A DNA stretch of 63,962 bases, the filler included, from Olpidium bornovanus S191 (Eukaryota > Fungi > Olpidiomycota): NCBI GenBank assembly GCA_017911155.1. It is 34 parts of 34 records of this genome, joined end to end, with 100 filler letters (N's around TTAATTAATTAA, not from the genome) between each part and the next. Parts side by side here need not be neighbours in the genome. Positions count along the whole stretch, not along the records: positions 40,375 to 44,337 come from JAEFCI010012404.1; 33 more parts are not named here. One strand, 5' to 3'. Below, piece after piece: positions 40,253-44,438 of the stretch (its first letter is position 1; the number at the start of each line of letters is the position of its first letter). Position numbers and translations under genes: made by a program. Below the pieces are notes generated by a model. The model saw nothing but the letters and a program-made list of their open reading frames with translations, was not told where the DNA came from and did not search any database.

Positions 40253-40785
40253 CCCCATTTCTTTTACCTCGCAANNNNNNNNNNNNNNNNNNNNNNNNNN
40301 NNNNNNNNNNNNNNNNNNTTAATTAATTAANNNNNNNNNNNNNNNNNNNNNNNNNNNNNNNNNNNNNNNNNNNNCATGATATAGTGGCCCTACGTAAACC
40401 AGTCTGCGGGGGGGGGGGGAAGGAACGCGCCACTCCCGACGGGAAAAAAATGAATAAATAAATAAAATAAAGTAAAAAGAAAAAGAAAAGAAAAAGAAAA
40501 GAACAACAAAAAGAAAAAAGAAAAAAACGAAAAGTAAAAAAGAGAAAGAAAGGAAAAAAGAAGAAGGAAAAAAAAACGCTCTCCCCGGAGAAGTTTGATT
40601 TGAAAAAGAGGTTCCTCTCCCCCATACGCTAACGCCCCTCCGCTGCTTAAAAAAAAAAAAAAAAAAAAAAACGCGTACCCGCTTTCCGTTTCCTCTCCGC
40701 CCACCGCCCCGCCGCCCCGCGGAAAAACCACCCGCTCGACCGCTCTGCGCCACGGGAGACTGCCGACGGCGACGCCTGCGCAGAA

Positions 40786-43700
40786 ATGGCCCAGGGGTCC
40801 GCGGACAAGGCCGAGCACCATGCTGGCCTGGTGCTGTACCGCTTGTCGCCGACGACGGGTGCCGCCGAGGTTCTGCTCTTCAACGACGTACGCAATTCAA
40901 CTCCAAACGCCCCGGTTACCCTCGGGCGCACGAAACCCCGCGACCGGTTGACACAGGAGGAGTGTGAAGACCGCACGTTGAACTTCCCCACGTTGAACTT
41001 TTTGCCAGTGTGCTTCGCCATCCTTTTAATTTGAAACTTTTCTGTCAGCGGTGGACTAACTTTCCTACTACACCGAACGCGCGCGTGCGTTGCGTTTGCG
41101 GGGTGCCTGCCGAATCCGCACACGATAAACGTGGGCGTTCCGCTCGCGCGTTGGCGTTGCGTGACTGAAGAGCTTTTCTCCAAAGGTTTGCTTTATTAGG
41201 CTCACGATCCGCTGCCGGCAGATTCGCTGACCTTAAATCCTCGTATTGCTCACGCAGCGACATTGGACACCGGCGAAGGGAAAAGTCGTTGGTTCTGAAA
41301 CTGATTTGAAGTACGTAACCGAACCATTTAGGAAGTGGGCTTTGGCGTCACGGAGGCATCTACTTACCTGTACGCCGGCCGCCCGACAGCTGCGCAAGGC
41401 GTCAAGTCGGCGAACTTACGGGGCTAGCTCCGAAGGATTACATGGTGGAAGATGACTTTAGGGTTGAGATTAAGTACCTCGCCGACACAAGGTGCGTCAA
41501 CGTTGACTTCGTACTTGTTCGCCAATAAATGAATGAACACGCGTACGGTTACTGGGACAACGCTTGACTTCTTCGTTTACCCAGACCAAAACGCGTAGTG
41601 TATCTTTTGGCGCACGTTTCGGACCAGGCGAGAATCGTGCCAGCGGGAGAAGGGATAAGTTTTGCATGGCTACCCGTGCAATCCGCACTGGACAAGTCGA
41701 TGTTTCGAAGCATGCATGACGTCCTCAGGAAGGCTTTCGAGTATATTGAGAAAGTGCGAGCCGCACGGGTCCCGCCGCCTGGTGCCATACTTGGAACTGG
41801 CGGAAGTCACCATTTCCGGACGCCGCATGAACTTGATCAGAGATTTTTGCGGAGCATGAATTTAGGGTCGCTGGAGGGGCAATTCAGTCGGCACCCGAGT
41901 CCAACACACAGCCCAGGTCAACAGCAATGGGGCGAAAGGCCTGGGGATGAGGAACGGTACTCACCCGGACCGCGCGTCGGTGGCAGTGAACCGCCGAGTG
42001 GCACAGCGGAGAGCACACTTTACAAAACGCGCCTGTGCGAGCGGTTTGAGAACGAAGGGCACTGCTCCTTTAGCTCCAAATGCTCGTTCGCCCACGGCTT
42101 GTATGAACTTCGCGAACGGCCCTTGCATCACAGCCGCAACGGCGGGCCGTCCCAGGCGGGGCCCGCAAGCGAAAACCGGCTGTTTAAGACGAAGCTTTGC
42201 GACAGATTTGCGCGCGAAGGGACCTGTGGCTATGGTTCCGCCTGCAACTTCGCTCACGGGGAGGCCGAGCTGCGTGAGCGACCCTCACCGCCGTTTGGCA
42301 GGACTCATTCGCGGGACGGCGAAGATGGCGACTCGGCGACGTGGGCGTCCTCCCTGCCCCGGCCTGGGGGTGAGAGGAAGTCCCGCCCACCATCCGAAGA
42401 ATGCCAGCTCCGTCCAGAGTCTCCTGGATTATTGGTGATGAAGCATCATCCTGGCACTTACGCCTTTAAGATGAGGTTGAATTCCGAGAAAGATCAAACA
42501 GTTGCGGCGACTACGTCTGCTGCGGGACCTGTCGAGTCCGGATCTGGAGTTCGACGAAGTCCCGCACGTCCGACGGAGGCGGAGTAGGTGTTTTCGCGCA
42601 CATCGAGTTAGCTTTATTGTTCCGAATGTCGCTTTTCTTTGGACCATTTTGTTTTCCGTATCCACACGATTTCTTAAACACCTCCCATCTCCCTCTTGTC
42701 GGCAGCTCTCAGCTAGCGAATCATGCCGACGGCTCTTACCGACAAGCAACGCCTGGCAGTACGCGAGGCGACGTCGATGCGGGTAGCGGCACGAAGGGTC
42801 TGACAAGCGCAGCGGCGTCAAATATGCGGTCCAGCGGCCGCGGAGACGCCCGAAAGAACGTTTCTCTTAAAGAACTGTTAAGTCAAGAAAAGGTATGAAC
42901 AAAGGCGCAACGTTTTGTTTTCTCTGCTCCTTCCACCCGCCTTCCCCCCACATTTACCCTTACTTCTTCCTTGGTTGTTATGCACCGGCCAAGATCAACG
43001 TCTCATACTTTTCTCTCCACATCCACTTCCCCAATTTTGCCGCTCCATTTTAGACAGAACAGGACCGAGCGTGGGTCCAGGTAGTGGAATATTTCGGAGA
43101 CGAACAAGAGAAAGTTAGGTTAGAGTAGACCGATGCCGTGTATAAGGTGCGTCGTGCATACGACAGGTTGTTTAGAATAACACTTTCGGTGAAGTCGGCC
43201 ACCTCCGAAGGTCCAGCAGCGGAAGCCGCCGAGTAAAGAGGAGCAGCTCGCAGCGGAGCTGAAGGAGTTTATGACAGGCAGCTTGGCGACCCTTCAATCC
43301 GCCGGCCCCGGTCCCGAGCAACAGAAGCTCTTTGCCGCGGAGATCAAAGGTACAAGAAATGGTTGCTTTTTTGGGGTTTCTGCTTTAGGGCTTCGTCTAT
43401 GCTTATGAAGCGCGTGAGACGGCTGACAGCGACGGAATGTGTTTGTGTTCCACAGAGGTCACCAGAATAGAGTTCCGGAATGATTTGTCAAAGCCGCAGT
43501 TATTCAACGTGCTGGTGCCAAGCTTGTGCGACGCCCCAGAATCGTTTGCGAAGAACCTGAAGCTGCGAATGCAGCTGATGAAGACAGTGAGTGTTTTCCA
43601 AGCAATTTGCGAACAGCTGTCTGCTCTACTTTCTTTAGCTCTACACGGAGAAGGGGTATCTACGTATTCGCTCTACTTCATCGCTAGTTCCCCTTGTACT

Positions 43701-43967
43701 TCGTTGCCTCGACGTTACCAGTTCGTCCGCTCCACAGCAGACCAGACTGCCTGGATCAATGCGTGGGAGCGGTGGCTTGCCAAGAATCCAGTGTTCCTTC
43801 CGCGCAGCGCTGCCGTATTCAAATTTTTCTATGACGTGGAGCTCGTTGAGGAGGACGCGTTTCTGATGTGGCACGCGGGACCTGTAGCCGCGGGGGGGAG
43901 CGCTGAAGTCCGCGAAAAGGTCCGACCGTTTATTGAGTGGCTGCAGAGTGCCGAAGAAGAGGATTGA
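40786..43967 (+). CDS. Multidomain protein: degenerate Nudix domain, 2 CCCH zinc fingers and a C-terminal W2 domain
   Basis: Proposed exons 40786-40887, 41171-41185, 41258-41310, 41390-41491, 41585-42583, 42706-42892, 43054-43118, 43195-43349, 43456-43586 and 43722-43967, all GT-AG and frame-compatible. The exon 7/8 boundaries are the least certain. Confidence 0.8.
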
Positions 43968-44438
43968 GGATTATGATCCGCCGCGCTACGAAGTACGCAC
44001 CGATTTGTTTCGTCGGAGGGAGGGGGGGGGAAATCTTTTTGGATCTCTTTCCTTATTCAAGTGACCCTTTCTCTGGAATCTTGGAAGAGCTGAATTTTTC
44101 GTTTCTTCGTTTTCCTTTCCCTTTCTTTGTTTTTCCTGTTCTTTTTTCTTCTTCTTTCTTATTTCTCTTTTTTTTTTTTCTGTTTCGTGTTCCGCGCGCC
44201 CACTAAAGGAAGTTTCACCAAGGTGGAGAACAATTCTAGGACTCGGAGAAAAACTCCCGGTCCAAACTTTTTCTCCCCCACTTGGTTATTCTTGTTCCCG
44301 TCTACGCCGCCGGCCGGATTTTAATCTCTGCCACATGNNNNNNNNNNNNNNNNNNNNNNNNNNNNNNNNNNNNNNNNNNNNTTAATTAATTAANNNNNNN
44401 NNNNNNNNNNNNNNNNNNNNNNNNNNNNNNNNNNNNNC

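Follow-up and report, generated by a model that had tools for sequence, protein, structure and literature searches.

Does one gene of Olpidium bornovanus, a fungus that infects roots, place a Nudix fold, a pair of CCCH zinc fingers and a W2 domain in one protein, and if so, what would such a protein do? The gene in question is the single gene, on the (+) strand, of JAEFCI010012404.1, a 3,963-bp contig that is contained whole at positions 40,375-44,337 of the window, that is, the entire stretch of 63,962 nucleotides (filler included) that was analysed and along which all coordinates are counted. An earlier interpretation made from the DNA without database searches (the sequence-only reading) had put forward this architecture, and each of the motifs that it quoted is present where it had been placed. 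A database match identified the deposited protein for the locus as KAG5456024.1 of Olpidium bornovanus.

The spliced model has 10 coding exons and yields a corrected protein of 684 aa (Table 1). Seven GT..AG joints, namely 41310>41390, 41491>41585, 42583>42706, 42892>43054, 43118>43195, 43349>43456 and 43586>43722, are present in X1 and X4, which are RNA contig sets from two independent studies, and these include the three junctions (42583-42706, 42892-43054 and 43118-43195) that had been named as the check on a single transcript. No reads for the stretch came from the raw-read RNA runs X19 and X16, which have no bearing on the transcript either way. A 1,421-nt contig (X1) extends from the Nudix exon at 41390-41491 through the CCCH exon to exon 7, and a 1,676-nt contig (X4) extends from 41952 in the CCCH region through the W2 exon to the 3'UTR. 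The Nudix, CCCH and W2 parts are one spliced transcript and one protein. The genomic long ORF does terminate at the TAG at 42585-42587, which would assign the W2 exons to an adjacent gene, for example eIF5 or eIF2B-epsilon, but this extremely improbable artefact reading is already refuted by the RNA contigs, as the TAG lies, as had been proposed, within a GTAGGT donor and is spliced out by the 42583>42706 joint in both studies, the two contigs above bridge CCCH to W2 and Nudix to CCCH and exon 7, at least 66 proteins, drawn from many orders of fungi and differing in intron structure, have the identical three-domain order, and a GAP or NT-transferase domain is absent upstream of W2.

Although every junction of the sequence-only reading stands, its gene model had missed a 15-nt micro-exon, and an intron in the 3'UTR, beginning 25 nt past the stop codon, has also been added. 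The GenBank model of the gene is wrong at three places, the micro-exon being among its omissions, and these errors have hidden the Nudix domain in the annotation. A search of the contig piece against Rfam gave no match. Minus-strand ORFs were rejected as genes, being either low-complexity read-through of purine/pyrimidine-rich flanks or antisense to coding exons.

Table 1. Exons, zinc fingers and 3'UTR intron of the Olpidium gene, with the basis of each assignment.
Feature	Position	Strand	Content	Basis
Coding exon 1, aa 1-34	40786..40887	+	Start codon; first Nudix beta-strands (AGLVLYR...EVLLFND)	ORF and GT donor; N-terminus alignable to family N-termini; RNA contigs over 40706-40887
Micro-exon, 15 nt, aa 35-39	41171..41185	+	SFSPK, close to family consensus SFSNK	AG/GT flanks; X1 contig reading AGCTTTTCTCCAAAG past 40887, then exon 3 start; loose contig ends in X1
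Coding exon 3, aa 40-56	41258..41310	+	RHWTPAKG motif; first half of Nudix box (GKVVGSETDL), the box GKVVGSETDLNCARRQVGELTGL being interrupted by the 41310>41390 splice	Joint 41310>41390 (X1, X4); alignment with family and NUDT2
Coding exon 4, aa 57-90	41390..41491	+	Second half of Nudix box, NCARRQVGELTGL (RE>RQ, EE>EL); strand with adenine-contacting Tyr (EIKYLA)	Both flanking joints in X1 and X4; residues compared to 21 canonical NUDT2
Coding exon 5, aa 91-423	41585..42583	+	Nudix end (KRVVYLLA...FAWLP...), disordered linker, both CCCH fingers, Ser/Gly/Pro-rich region	Exon end one base ahead of GTAGGT donor
CCCH finger 1, aa 242-261	42036..42095	+	C-x8-C-x5-C-x3-H; lead-in LYKTRLC from 42018	
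CCCH finger 2, aa 296-315	42198..42257	+	C-x8-C-x5-C-x3-H; lead-in LFKTKLC from 42180	
Coding exon 6, aa 424-486	42706..42892	+	Disordered Ser/Gly-rich linker	Joints X1, X4; open frame
Coding exon 7, aa 487-507	43054..43118	+	Motif RAWVQVVEY just N-terminal of W2 (family K-x-W-x-K-V-V-E-L); short helix in AF2 model of orthologue	Joints; conserved column block in alignment
Coding exon 8, aa 508-559	43195..43349	+	Linker; helix 1 of W2 HEAT domain	Joints; family alignment
Coding exon 9, aa 560-603	43456..43586	+	W2 helices (KEVTRIEFRNDLSKPQLFNVLV...)	Joints; conserved block KE.TR.EFR.DL.K.QLF
Coding exon 10, aa 604-684 + TGA	43722..43967	+	W2 core; AA-box 1 FYDVELVEEDAFLMW; AA-box 2 PFIEWLQSAEEED, ending at the stop	
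3'UTR intron, 216 nt	43993..44208	+	GT..AG (GTACGC...CTAAAG)	Joint 43992>44209 in X1 and X4

The same three domains are found together in at least 66 relatives from chytrids, Zoopagomycota, Mucorales, Mortierellales and Glomeromycotina, the last three being groups of non-zoosporic fungi, and the Olpidium protein can be aligned over its full length to chytrid, Mucorales, Mortierellales and Glomeromycotina members. Pfam recognises NUDIX, two zf-CCCH and W2 in nine orthologues, and precomputed Pfam assignments show them in most of 107 profile matches; the named three-domain matches are all from non-Dikarya fungi, and the family appears to be absent from Dikarya. These relatives were already in GenBank and UniProt under automatic names, and a survey of fungal NUDIX proteins has described a fungi-only, highly disordered 'subfamily A' of 84 proteins, distantly related to human NUDT2, most of which carry W2 (PF02020) and zf-CCCH (PF00642) (Pasterny et al., BMC Genomics 2025; PMC12210691). 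This survey treats subfamily A as enzymes with a preserved motif of 'at least two glutamates' and docks Ap3A and Ap4A; Olpidium was not included, and no RNA or translation role was put forward (PMC12210691). Judged by its NUDT2-like Nudix domain, its two fingers plus W2 and its fungal origin, the Olpidium protein is a member of subfamily A. The earlier claim that no characterised protein has this architecture therefore holds, because subfamily A remains uncharacterised, but the architecture itself is not new, since it occurs in dozens of early-diverging fungi and in the survey.

The Nudix exon pieces of Olpidium are too short for Pfam scoring, and the fold was assigned by comparing the spliced model with the family and with orthologues; structural and whole-protein Pfam work was likewise done on orthologues standing in for the 684-aa protein. 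When the spliced N-terminus (aa 1-160) was compared locally with family members, the best match reached E 2e-49. Orthologue Nudix domains score up to 45 bits with Pfam NUDIX, match human NUDT2 (3U53, E 3.9e-18) and the C. elegans enzyme (1KT9, E 1.4e-17) among PDB sequences, and superpose on NUDT2 structures in Foldseek with target TM 0.83-0.91 and rmsd of about 2 A, in agreement with the NUDT2 likeness first proposed; Dcp2 and the decapping enzyme g5R of ASFV are matched more weakly in sequence. Conservation along the protein is highest in the Nudix domain, where mean column identity is 54% vs 24% overall.

What sets this domain apart is its Nudix box. Against the canonical GX5EX7REUXEEXGU, Olpidium reads R-Q-V-G-E-L, so that the changes of RE to RQ and EE to EL noticed at the outset are real and leave the protein without two of the three REUXEE glutamates. 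Comparison of 67 fusion proteins with 21 stand-alone NUDT2, in human NUDT2 numbering, shows that the loss is conserved: E62, the second Glu of 'EE', is Glu in 21/21 stand-alone enzymes and acidic in 0/67 fusion proteins, all of which have I/L/V/T/A instead. E58, the 'RE' Glu, is kept in 41/67 fusion proteins vs 21/21 NUDT2, having disappeared from at least six lineages, one of them Olpidium (Gln). Mutagenesis of MutT and of the C. elegans Ap4A hydrolase reportedly found that loss at these two Glu positions costs 10^3-10^5 in kcat. NUDT2 E58A is inactive (PMC8616924), and the MutT equivalent of E58, Glu53, is the general base (PMC9173781). PDB titles, read with their numbering offsets, place the inactivating mutations of 4IJX and 1XSA at the E58-equivalent residue, E63A of 1XSA (numbering +5) being E58A.

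The Ap4A-hydrolase-like domain of Olpidium is thus probably inactive, although residual or altered catalysis may occur in the fusion family, because Glu at E49, E61 and E110 is still present in most members, Olpidium included, and because the survey treats the family as enzymes (PMC12210691). The residues aligned with the NUDT2 pocket have been retained: W38, K42, E49, R57, F76, K89 and W116 are each found in 67/67 fusion proteins, F/Y128 in 67/67 and the adenine-contacting Tyr82 in 66/67. Both features of ApnA hydrolases, the specificity Tyr (Tyr82) and the phosphate-binding Lys (Lys42 and Lys89), are therein preserved, and the role of the nucleotide-contacting Tyr in these enzymes has been described (PMC5389931). 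Because the pocket is kept and catalytic glutamates are lost in every member, this domain is a natural candidate receptor for Ap4A or unusual RNA 5' ends. To our knowledge, eukaryotic readers of such ligands are largely unknown. A profile search gave stand-alone NUDT2 in animals and bacteria only, and a search by word index, for which one Nudix domain served as query, returned fragments of the same fusion family and nothing else; this points weakly to a stand-alone NUDT2 being absent from fungi, and the fungal NUDT2 lineage may survive only as this pseudo-enzyme and may have been lost in Dikarya.

The zinc fingers are well defined. Pfam recognises two zf-CCCH in the Olpidium protein at 66 bits (E 2.5e-18), well over the curated cut-off, and their best PDB matches are TTP (1M9O, E 8e-15) and TIS11d (1RGO, E 3.6e-13), which bears out the assignment to the TTP type. 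The family consensus of the lead-in is PLYKTRLC. The TTP/TIS11 family is defined by exactly 18 residues between the fingers and by an (R/K)YKTELC lead-in. In Olpidium the spacer is 34 aa, exactly as first counted, and over the 67 members it ranges from 26 to 102 aa and is 18 in none; the RNA specificity of the fingers may for this reason differ from the UAUUUAU-type element.

The W2 domain of Olpidium (PF02020) scores 66.4 bits in Pfam (E 2.4e-18; cut-off 30), and both aromatic-acidic boxes foreseen by the sequence-only reading lie in the last exon, at the C-terminus of the protein. Their consensus sequences, Y-D-x-D-L-V-E-E-D-x-F-L-x-W and P-F-x-x-W-L-x-T-A-E-E-E, are conserved family-wide. 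In the AF2 model of an orthologue the domain has 9 helices over about 170 aa with pLDDT of about 90. The orthologue W2 is closest to the eIF5 CTD (6KND, E 6e-9; also 2FUL and 2IU1), ahead of eIF2B-epsilon (3e-4) and eIF4G (3e-3), a sub-type that was assigned by sequence, the whole-protein Foldseek list being taken up by Nudix matches. In window pieces and orthologues alike, Pfam did not recognise an N-terminal domain of the eIF5/eIF2-beta type, which in eIF5 is the GAP domain with its Arg finger and zinc-binding module. W2 domains have several partners, including eIF2-beta, eIF3c, eIF1 and Mnk1. As far as we know, the characterised ones are all in cytoplasmic translation factors, being known solely from eIF5, eIF2B-epsilon, eIF4G/DAP5 and the general repressor 5MP. 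One such protein without GAP, 5MP1, is a translational repressor that binds both eIF2 and eIF3 (PMC3201852).

Taken together, these features suggest, with about even chances in our estimation, that subfamily A is best explained as an mRNA-specific translational adaptor combining a non-hydrolysing Nudix domain, RNA-binding fingers and an eIF-binding W2 domain. The fingers would most likely recognise a pair of U/A-rich half-sites in single-stranded RNA, and these need not adjoin given the spacer of 34 rather than 18 aa, and the W2 domain would most likely bind the eIF2-beta K-boxes and/or eIF3c/eIF1, as do eIF5 and the eIF5-mimic proteins. On the transcripts to which it is bound, the protein could in this way capture eIF2/eIF3 or compete for them. 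[quoted passage not shown] As to the direction of regulation, repression seems likelier than activation, because a W2 domain without a GAP domain is the mode of 5MP/BZW. The role in dormant spores or zoospores that the sequence-only reading suggested is conjecture, and the family is also present in fungi without zoospores.

Among the alternatives, the one that survives best is that of an active RNA-targeted Nudix hydrolase, in which the fingers would bring a NUDT2-type enzyme to chosen mRNAs, removal of the cap, Np4N cap or 5' phosphates would lead to decay, and the link between this reaction and initiation complexes would be made by W2. TTP brings in Dcp2, and here the same would be achieved in one chain. 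NUDT2 does act on RNA 5' ends, which it favours over free NTPs (PMC8616924), and ApnA hydrolases are able to cleave cap analogues (PMC5389931); the g5R and Dcp2 matches, the survey's preserved motif and docking (PMC12210691), and the glutamates kept at E49, E61, E110 and, in 41/67, E58 are also in keeping with an enzyme. The replacement of E62 throughout the fusion family is not, however, nor is the repeated loss of the 'RE' Glu, mutation of which kills NUDT2 (PMC8616924; PDB 4IJX), and we regard this alternative as unlikely.

A second alternative would make the protein a nuclear or 3'-end mRNA-processing factor like CF Im25 (NUDT21), with the dead Nudix domain and the fingers recognising RNA and W2 serving as a general HEAT interaction module unrelated to eIF2. 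CF Im25 offers a precedent in mRNA processing, since its Nudix glutamates are replaced by Leu/Ile and it binds Ap4A at 2.4 uM while hydrolysing no Ap4A, ATP or cap analogue (PMC2425470), and most members of the new fungal NUDIX subfamilies are predicted to be nuclear (PMC12210691), a prediction that also counts against the translational adaptor. However, the Nudix domain here is of the NUDT2 type rather than of the NUDT21 family PF13869, and the W2 domain resembles the eIF5 CTD in particular, with both AA-boxes retained. W2 domains, so far as they have been characterised, are known from cytoplasmic translation factors alone, and this alternative seems to us quite improbable.

Returning to the translational adaptor, a more specific version is conceivable, though we hold it only tentatively and think it rather doubtful: a translational switch, found in early-diverging fungi alone, that acts on specific mRNAs and is gated by a ligand. 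In it, the dead NUDT2 pocket would sense either Ap4A, a stress alarmone, or the group (m7G cap, Np4N cap or triphosphate) that the bound mRNA carries at its 5' end, and the state of the pocket would decide whether W2 captures eIF2/eIF3 on transcripts picked by the TTP-type fingers. If true, one polypeptide would connect a nucleotide alarmone with an AU-rich code and with the ternary complex. More generally, a W2 domain wired to TTP-type fingers would allow eIF2/eIF3 capture to be aimed directly at particular mRNAs, which in animals takes multi-protein assemblies. The fungi that carry the family (chytrids, Olpidium, Zoopagomycota and Mucoromycota) include mycorrhizal fungi, agents of mucormycosis and parasites of plants and amphibians, and its apparent absence from Dikarya means that it may mark a translational control overlooked by yeast-centred work. 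Tractable hosts such as Mucor and Spizellomyces make the idea testable.

Finally, the protein can be set beside the known systems from which its parts are familiar. It shares fold and sub-type with NUDT2 (human 3U53 and C. elegans 1KT9; E 4e-18, target TM up to 0.91), and the HWTPPKG motif, Tyr82, Lys42, Lys89 and Trp116 are conserved in the fusion family, but the REUXEE of NUDT2 is RQVGEL in Olpidium and RE/N-x-x-E/D-hydrophobic in the family, and the fusion proteins are about 530 residues longer, carrying RNA-binding and W2 modules. CF Im25/NUDT21, which likewise has a Nudix fold and handles mRNA, parallels the proposed dead pocket in function but is no homologue at the sub-family level, being a nuclear PF13869 protein of 3'-end processing without CCCH or W2. 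With TTP/TIS11 and Zfs1-Cth2 it has in common the C-x8-C-x5-C-x3-H fingers, an (L/R)YKT(R/E)LC lead-in and the aromatic residues; the Olpidium lead-ins are, however, near rather than identical to R/KYKTELC, the spacer is never the 18 aa of TTP, and the C-terminus is W2, with no NOT1-binding motif noticed in the family alignments (inspected without a dedicated motif search). Like the eIF5 CTD and 5MP1/5MP2 (BZW2/BZW1), it ends, at the very C-terminus, in a W2-type HEAT domain that bears both aromatic/acidic boxes, and it lacks the GAP domain of eIF5, as 5MP does, and, unlike 5MP, the MA3 domain. Its W2 is instead tethered to RNA-binding fingers and a Nudix fold, an arrangement that we know from no characterised W2 protein. 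To subfamily A it is most closely similar, being of the same family with NUDT2-like, zf-CCCH and W2 parts, and the present analysis adds to the 2025 survey the loss of E62 in 67/67 members, the recurrent loss of E58 and the invariant residues of the nucleotide pocket.

The gene under study is the single gene, on the plus strand, of a complete 3,963-bp contig (40375-44337) in the metagenome-assembled genome of Olpidium bornovanus, an early-diverging, zoosporic fungus that infects roots. An exact protein look-up gives the deposited product as KAG5456024.1, 'hypothetical protein BJ554DRAFT_4349'. In a model built from the motifs of the sequence-only reading and GT/AG boundaries, the frame is open throughout from ATG 40786 to TGA 43965-43967, and the corrected product has ten coding exons and 684 aa. 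The mRNA after 40887 reads AGCTTTTCTCCAAAG and then enters the next exon, as seen in the loose ends of contigs from X1, one of two RNA studies used here; the micro-exon thus recovered was missing from the earlier model, and its peptide agrees with the family consensus SFSNK at the same position. KAG5456024.1 (770 aa) already links all parts and contains three errors: both Nudix-box exons are mis-spliced (about 50 residues wrong), the micro-exon is omitted, and the last two introns (43350-43455 and 43587-43721) are kept. Because of these splicing errors, Pfam calls no NUDIX domain on the deposited protein. A further intron begins 25 nt past the stop codon, which is too near to it for an obvious NMD trigger.

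Contigs assembled from the RNA of two independent studies (X1 and X4), compared with 40375-44337, contain the GT..AG joints 41310>41390, 41491>41585, 42583>42706, 42892>43054, 43118>43195, 43349>43456 and 43586>43722, among them all three junctions (42583-42706, 42892-43054, 43118-43195) that had been predicted from the genomic sequence. The apparent stop TAG 42585-42587 was correctly placed inside a GTAGGT donor and is spliced out by the joint 42583>42706. In X4, a 1,676-nt contig starts at 41952, upstream of the fingers, and covers all later exons into the 3'UTR; in X1, a contig of 1,421 nt runs from the second Nudix-box exon (41390-41491) through the finger exon to exon 7. This joint and these long contigs therefore exclude a Nudix-CCCH frame that ends at the TAG, with the W2 exons in a separate gene.

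Several minor features of the RNA contigs were also observed. X1 differs from the genomic contig by A>T at 41642 (Pro110) and T>C at 42425 (Pro371), both synonymous, as expected if strains vary under purifying selection. Intron 1 is unspliced in lower-depth contigs (X1 record 2, 40858-41185; X4 records 7-8, 40951-41310; depth about 21 versus 93 for the spliced contig), which could reflect intron retention, pre-mRNA or DNA carry-over. In X1, 81 nt upstream of 40706, ending ...CAACCACAGGCAGTCA, are unmatched to the genomic contig, and the X4 contigs start at about 40710 without this extra stretch. Since no AG acceptor is present there, an ordinary 5'UTR intron is excluded; the extra sequence may come from contig chimerism, from mis-assembly of the low-complexity 5' flank, or from a leader of other origin. 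Long purine-rich (A/G) runs at 40440-40570 upstream and pyrimidine-rich (T/C) runs at 44100-44175 downstream, together with G and A homopolymers, are of low complexity; all of these were passed over as repeats in the RNA comparison and account for spurious minus-strand ORFs.

On in-frame pieces of the window, Pfam scores two zf-CCCH fingers at 66 bits (E 2.5e-18) and a W2 domain at 66.4 bits (E 2.4e-18). The C-x8-C-x5-C-x3-H fingers, with the lead-ins LYKTRLC and LFKTKLC, occupy residues 242-261 and 296-315, and their closest solved structures are TTP 1M9O (E 8e-15), the C. elegans cytoplasmic zinc-finger protein 6NZL and TIS11d 1RGO. The Olpidium Nudix exons are singly too short for Pfam scoring, and the domain was identified through the spliced N-terminus, whose best match among relatives reaches E 2e-49, and through those relatives, which score up to 45 bits for Pfam NUDIX. 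Their Nudix domain matches human NUDT2 (3U53, E 3.9e-18) and the C. elegans Ap4A hydrolase (1KT9, E 1.4e-17), and decapping enzymes far more weakly (g5R 7.5e-5, Dcp2 4e-4). Modelled by AlphaFold2 with the family alignment, the Mortierella orthologue shows a confident alpha/beta/alpha domain (1-150) and a C-terminal domain of nine helices (544-710, pLDDT about 90), besides two small finger modules and long disordered linkers; in Foldseek, its Nudix domain falls with human and nematode Ap4A hydrolases (target TM 0.83-0.91, rmsd 1.8-2.5 Å). For W2, compared through the Basidiobolus orthologue, the nearest match is the C-terminal domain of eIF5 (6KND at E 6e-9; about 3e-6 for yeast 2FUL and human 2IU1), ahead of eIF2B-epsilon (3e-4) and eIF4G (3e-3), and aromatic/acidic boxes 1 and 2 are kept throughout the family alignment. 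Just 5' of W2 lies RAWVQVVEY (aa 487-507; 43054-43118; family form K-x-W-M-K-V-V-E-L), a short motif kept family-wide and predicted as a short helix in the orthologue model, which may be a W2 extension or a separate docking motif.

An exhaustive phmmer search with the large exon, together with local scans, revealed dozens of proteins that share this module order and are 500-1,000 aa long, and a profile search gave 107 matches at E <= 1e-20. The proposed three-domain architecture is thus real and conserved, with the Nudix motif, two fingers and W2 end shared by 66 fetched relatives plus Olpidium. All named three-domain members are non-Dikarya fungi: many chytrid orders, Olpidium, Basidiobolus, Dimargaritales, Kickxellales, Harpellales, Mucorales, Umbelopsis, Mortierellales, Endogone, Calcarisporiella and Glomeromycotina. 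A suggested link to dormant spores or zoospores is unsupported; non-flagellated fungi carry the family too. Database names are all automatic ('hypothetical', 'nudix-type motif 2', 'Cth1p', 'eIF4-gamma/eIF5/eIF2-epsilon-domain-containing'), and full-text literature searches found no functional study of the NUDIX, zf-CCCH and W2 combination. A 2025 survey of fungal NUDIX proteins lists 84 of them from 183 proteomes as 'subfamily A', found in fungi only, 51% disordered, most with W2 (PF02020) and zf-CCCH (PF00642), and with human NUDT2 as a distant relative; it mentions neither Olpidium nor inactivity, and it gives this subfamily no role in mRNA handling or translation (PMC12210691). Therefore, the architecture was already on record, though uncharacterised, and the Olpidium protein is a new member of a catalogued family. 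A separate profile search, which needs shared words, recovered the 21 stand-alone NUDT2 enzymes aligned below and no stand-alone fungal NUDT2, its fungal matches being partial fusion-family fragments, and the fungal NUDT2 lineage may exist solely as the fused, glutamate-poor form.

Features of the gene (coordinates along the window) and of the Nudix domain (human NUDT2 numbering; 21 stand-alone NUDT2 aligned with 67 family members, many of them closely related, so that counts reflect lineages and not independent events)
Feature	Position	Strand	Stand-alone NUDT2	Fusion family	Basis or remark
Micro-exon, 15 nt	41171-41185	+			X1 contig loose ends, AG/GT flanks; encodes SFSPK
3'UTR intron, 216 nt, GT..AG	43993-44208	+			Spliced in X1 and X4
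Second 'EE' Glu	E62		Glu 21/21	Acidic 0/67: I 48, L 7, T 7, V 4, A 1	
'RE' Glu	E58		Glu 21/21	Glu 41/67	
Glu	E61		Glu 21/21	Glu or Asp 62/67	
Glu	E110		Glu 21/21	Glu 54/67	
Conserved set	W38, K42, E49, R57, F76, K89, W116		Invariant, but F76 17/21	67/67	
Adenine-contacting Tyr	Y82		21/21	66/67	
Aromatic	F128		Mostly Phe/Tyr	Always Phe/Tyr	

The degenerate Nudix box read from the Olpidium sequence likewise proved to be conserved, most strictly at E62. Mutation of this second 'EE' glutamate reportedly lowers kcat by about 10^5 in MutT and the C. elegans Ap4A hydrolase. E58 is replaced by Asn in all Glomeromycotina and in Harpellales, by Val/Ser in Dimargaritales, by Val/Ala in Spizellomycetales, and by Gln in one Mortierellales member and in Olpidium, a distribution that implies at least six separate losses and leaves Olpidium with one glutamate fewer than most members. 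NUDT2 E58A is inactive on 5'-triphosphate RNA (PMC8616924), the inactivating mutations in PDB 4IJX (E58A) and 1XSA ('E63A', numbering +5) affect this same residue, and its counterpart in MutT, Glu53, serves as general base (PMC9173781). The role of Tyr82, which is Tyr87 in the NMR structure, has been described (PMC5389931). The Nudix domain is the best-conserved part of the protein, with a mean column identity of 54% versus 24% overall. Judged from the alignment, lost catalytic residues, a frozen pocket and strong constraint are together the signature of a putative ligand-binding pseudo-enzyme.

Because TTP-type lead-ins and aromatic positions are kept, the fingers probably bind U/A-rich single-stranded RNA. 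[quoted passage not shown] An active RNA-targeted hydrolase seems unlikely. The survey takes the new subfamilies to be enzymes whose motif is preserved, and it docks Ap3A/Ap4A (PMC12210691); against this stands the family-wide replacement of E62. CF Im25, in which Leu and Ile stand in place of two Nudix glutamates, is a precedent for a dead Nudix domain, binding Ap4A at 2.4 uM and leaving Ap4A, ATP and a cap analogue unhydrolysed (PMC2425470); we give a similar nuclear processing role for the Olpidium protein only a slim chance. A gene-fusion artefact is effectively excluded, as the long X4 and X1 contigs connect Nudix, fingers and W2.

Overall, the sequence-only observation is confirmed and refined, and its interpretation holds in part. 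New are the RNA-supported gene model of the Olpidium member, the finding that catalytic glutamates are lost family-wide from a domain whose pocket is conserved, and the assignment of W2, by similarity, to the eIF5 type. The family is a testable, lineage-wide candidate for connecting eIF2 with RNA recognition of the AU-rich type and a nucleotide-binding pseudo-enzyme.

In the TTP family the inter-finger spacer is 18 aa, and the Olpidium protein, with 34 aa, departs from it, as does every member, the spacer ranging from 26 to 102 aa; therefore, the RNA half-sites of the two fingers may lie apart. The likeness to 5MP1 lies in an eIF5-like W2 with both aromatic/acidic boxes and without a GAP domain: 5MP1, a characterised GAP-less W2 protein, binds eIF2 and eIF3 and represses translation and, in its authors' speculation, works as part of mRNA-specific repressive complexes (PMC3201852).
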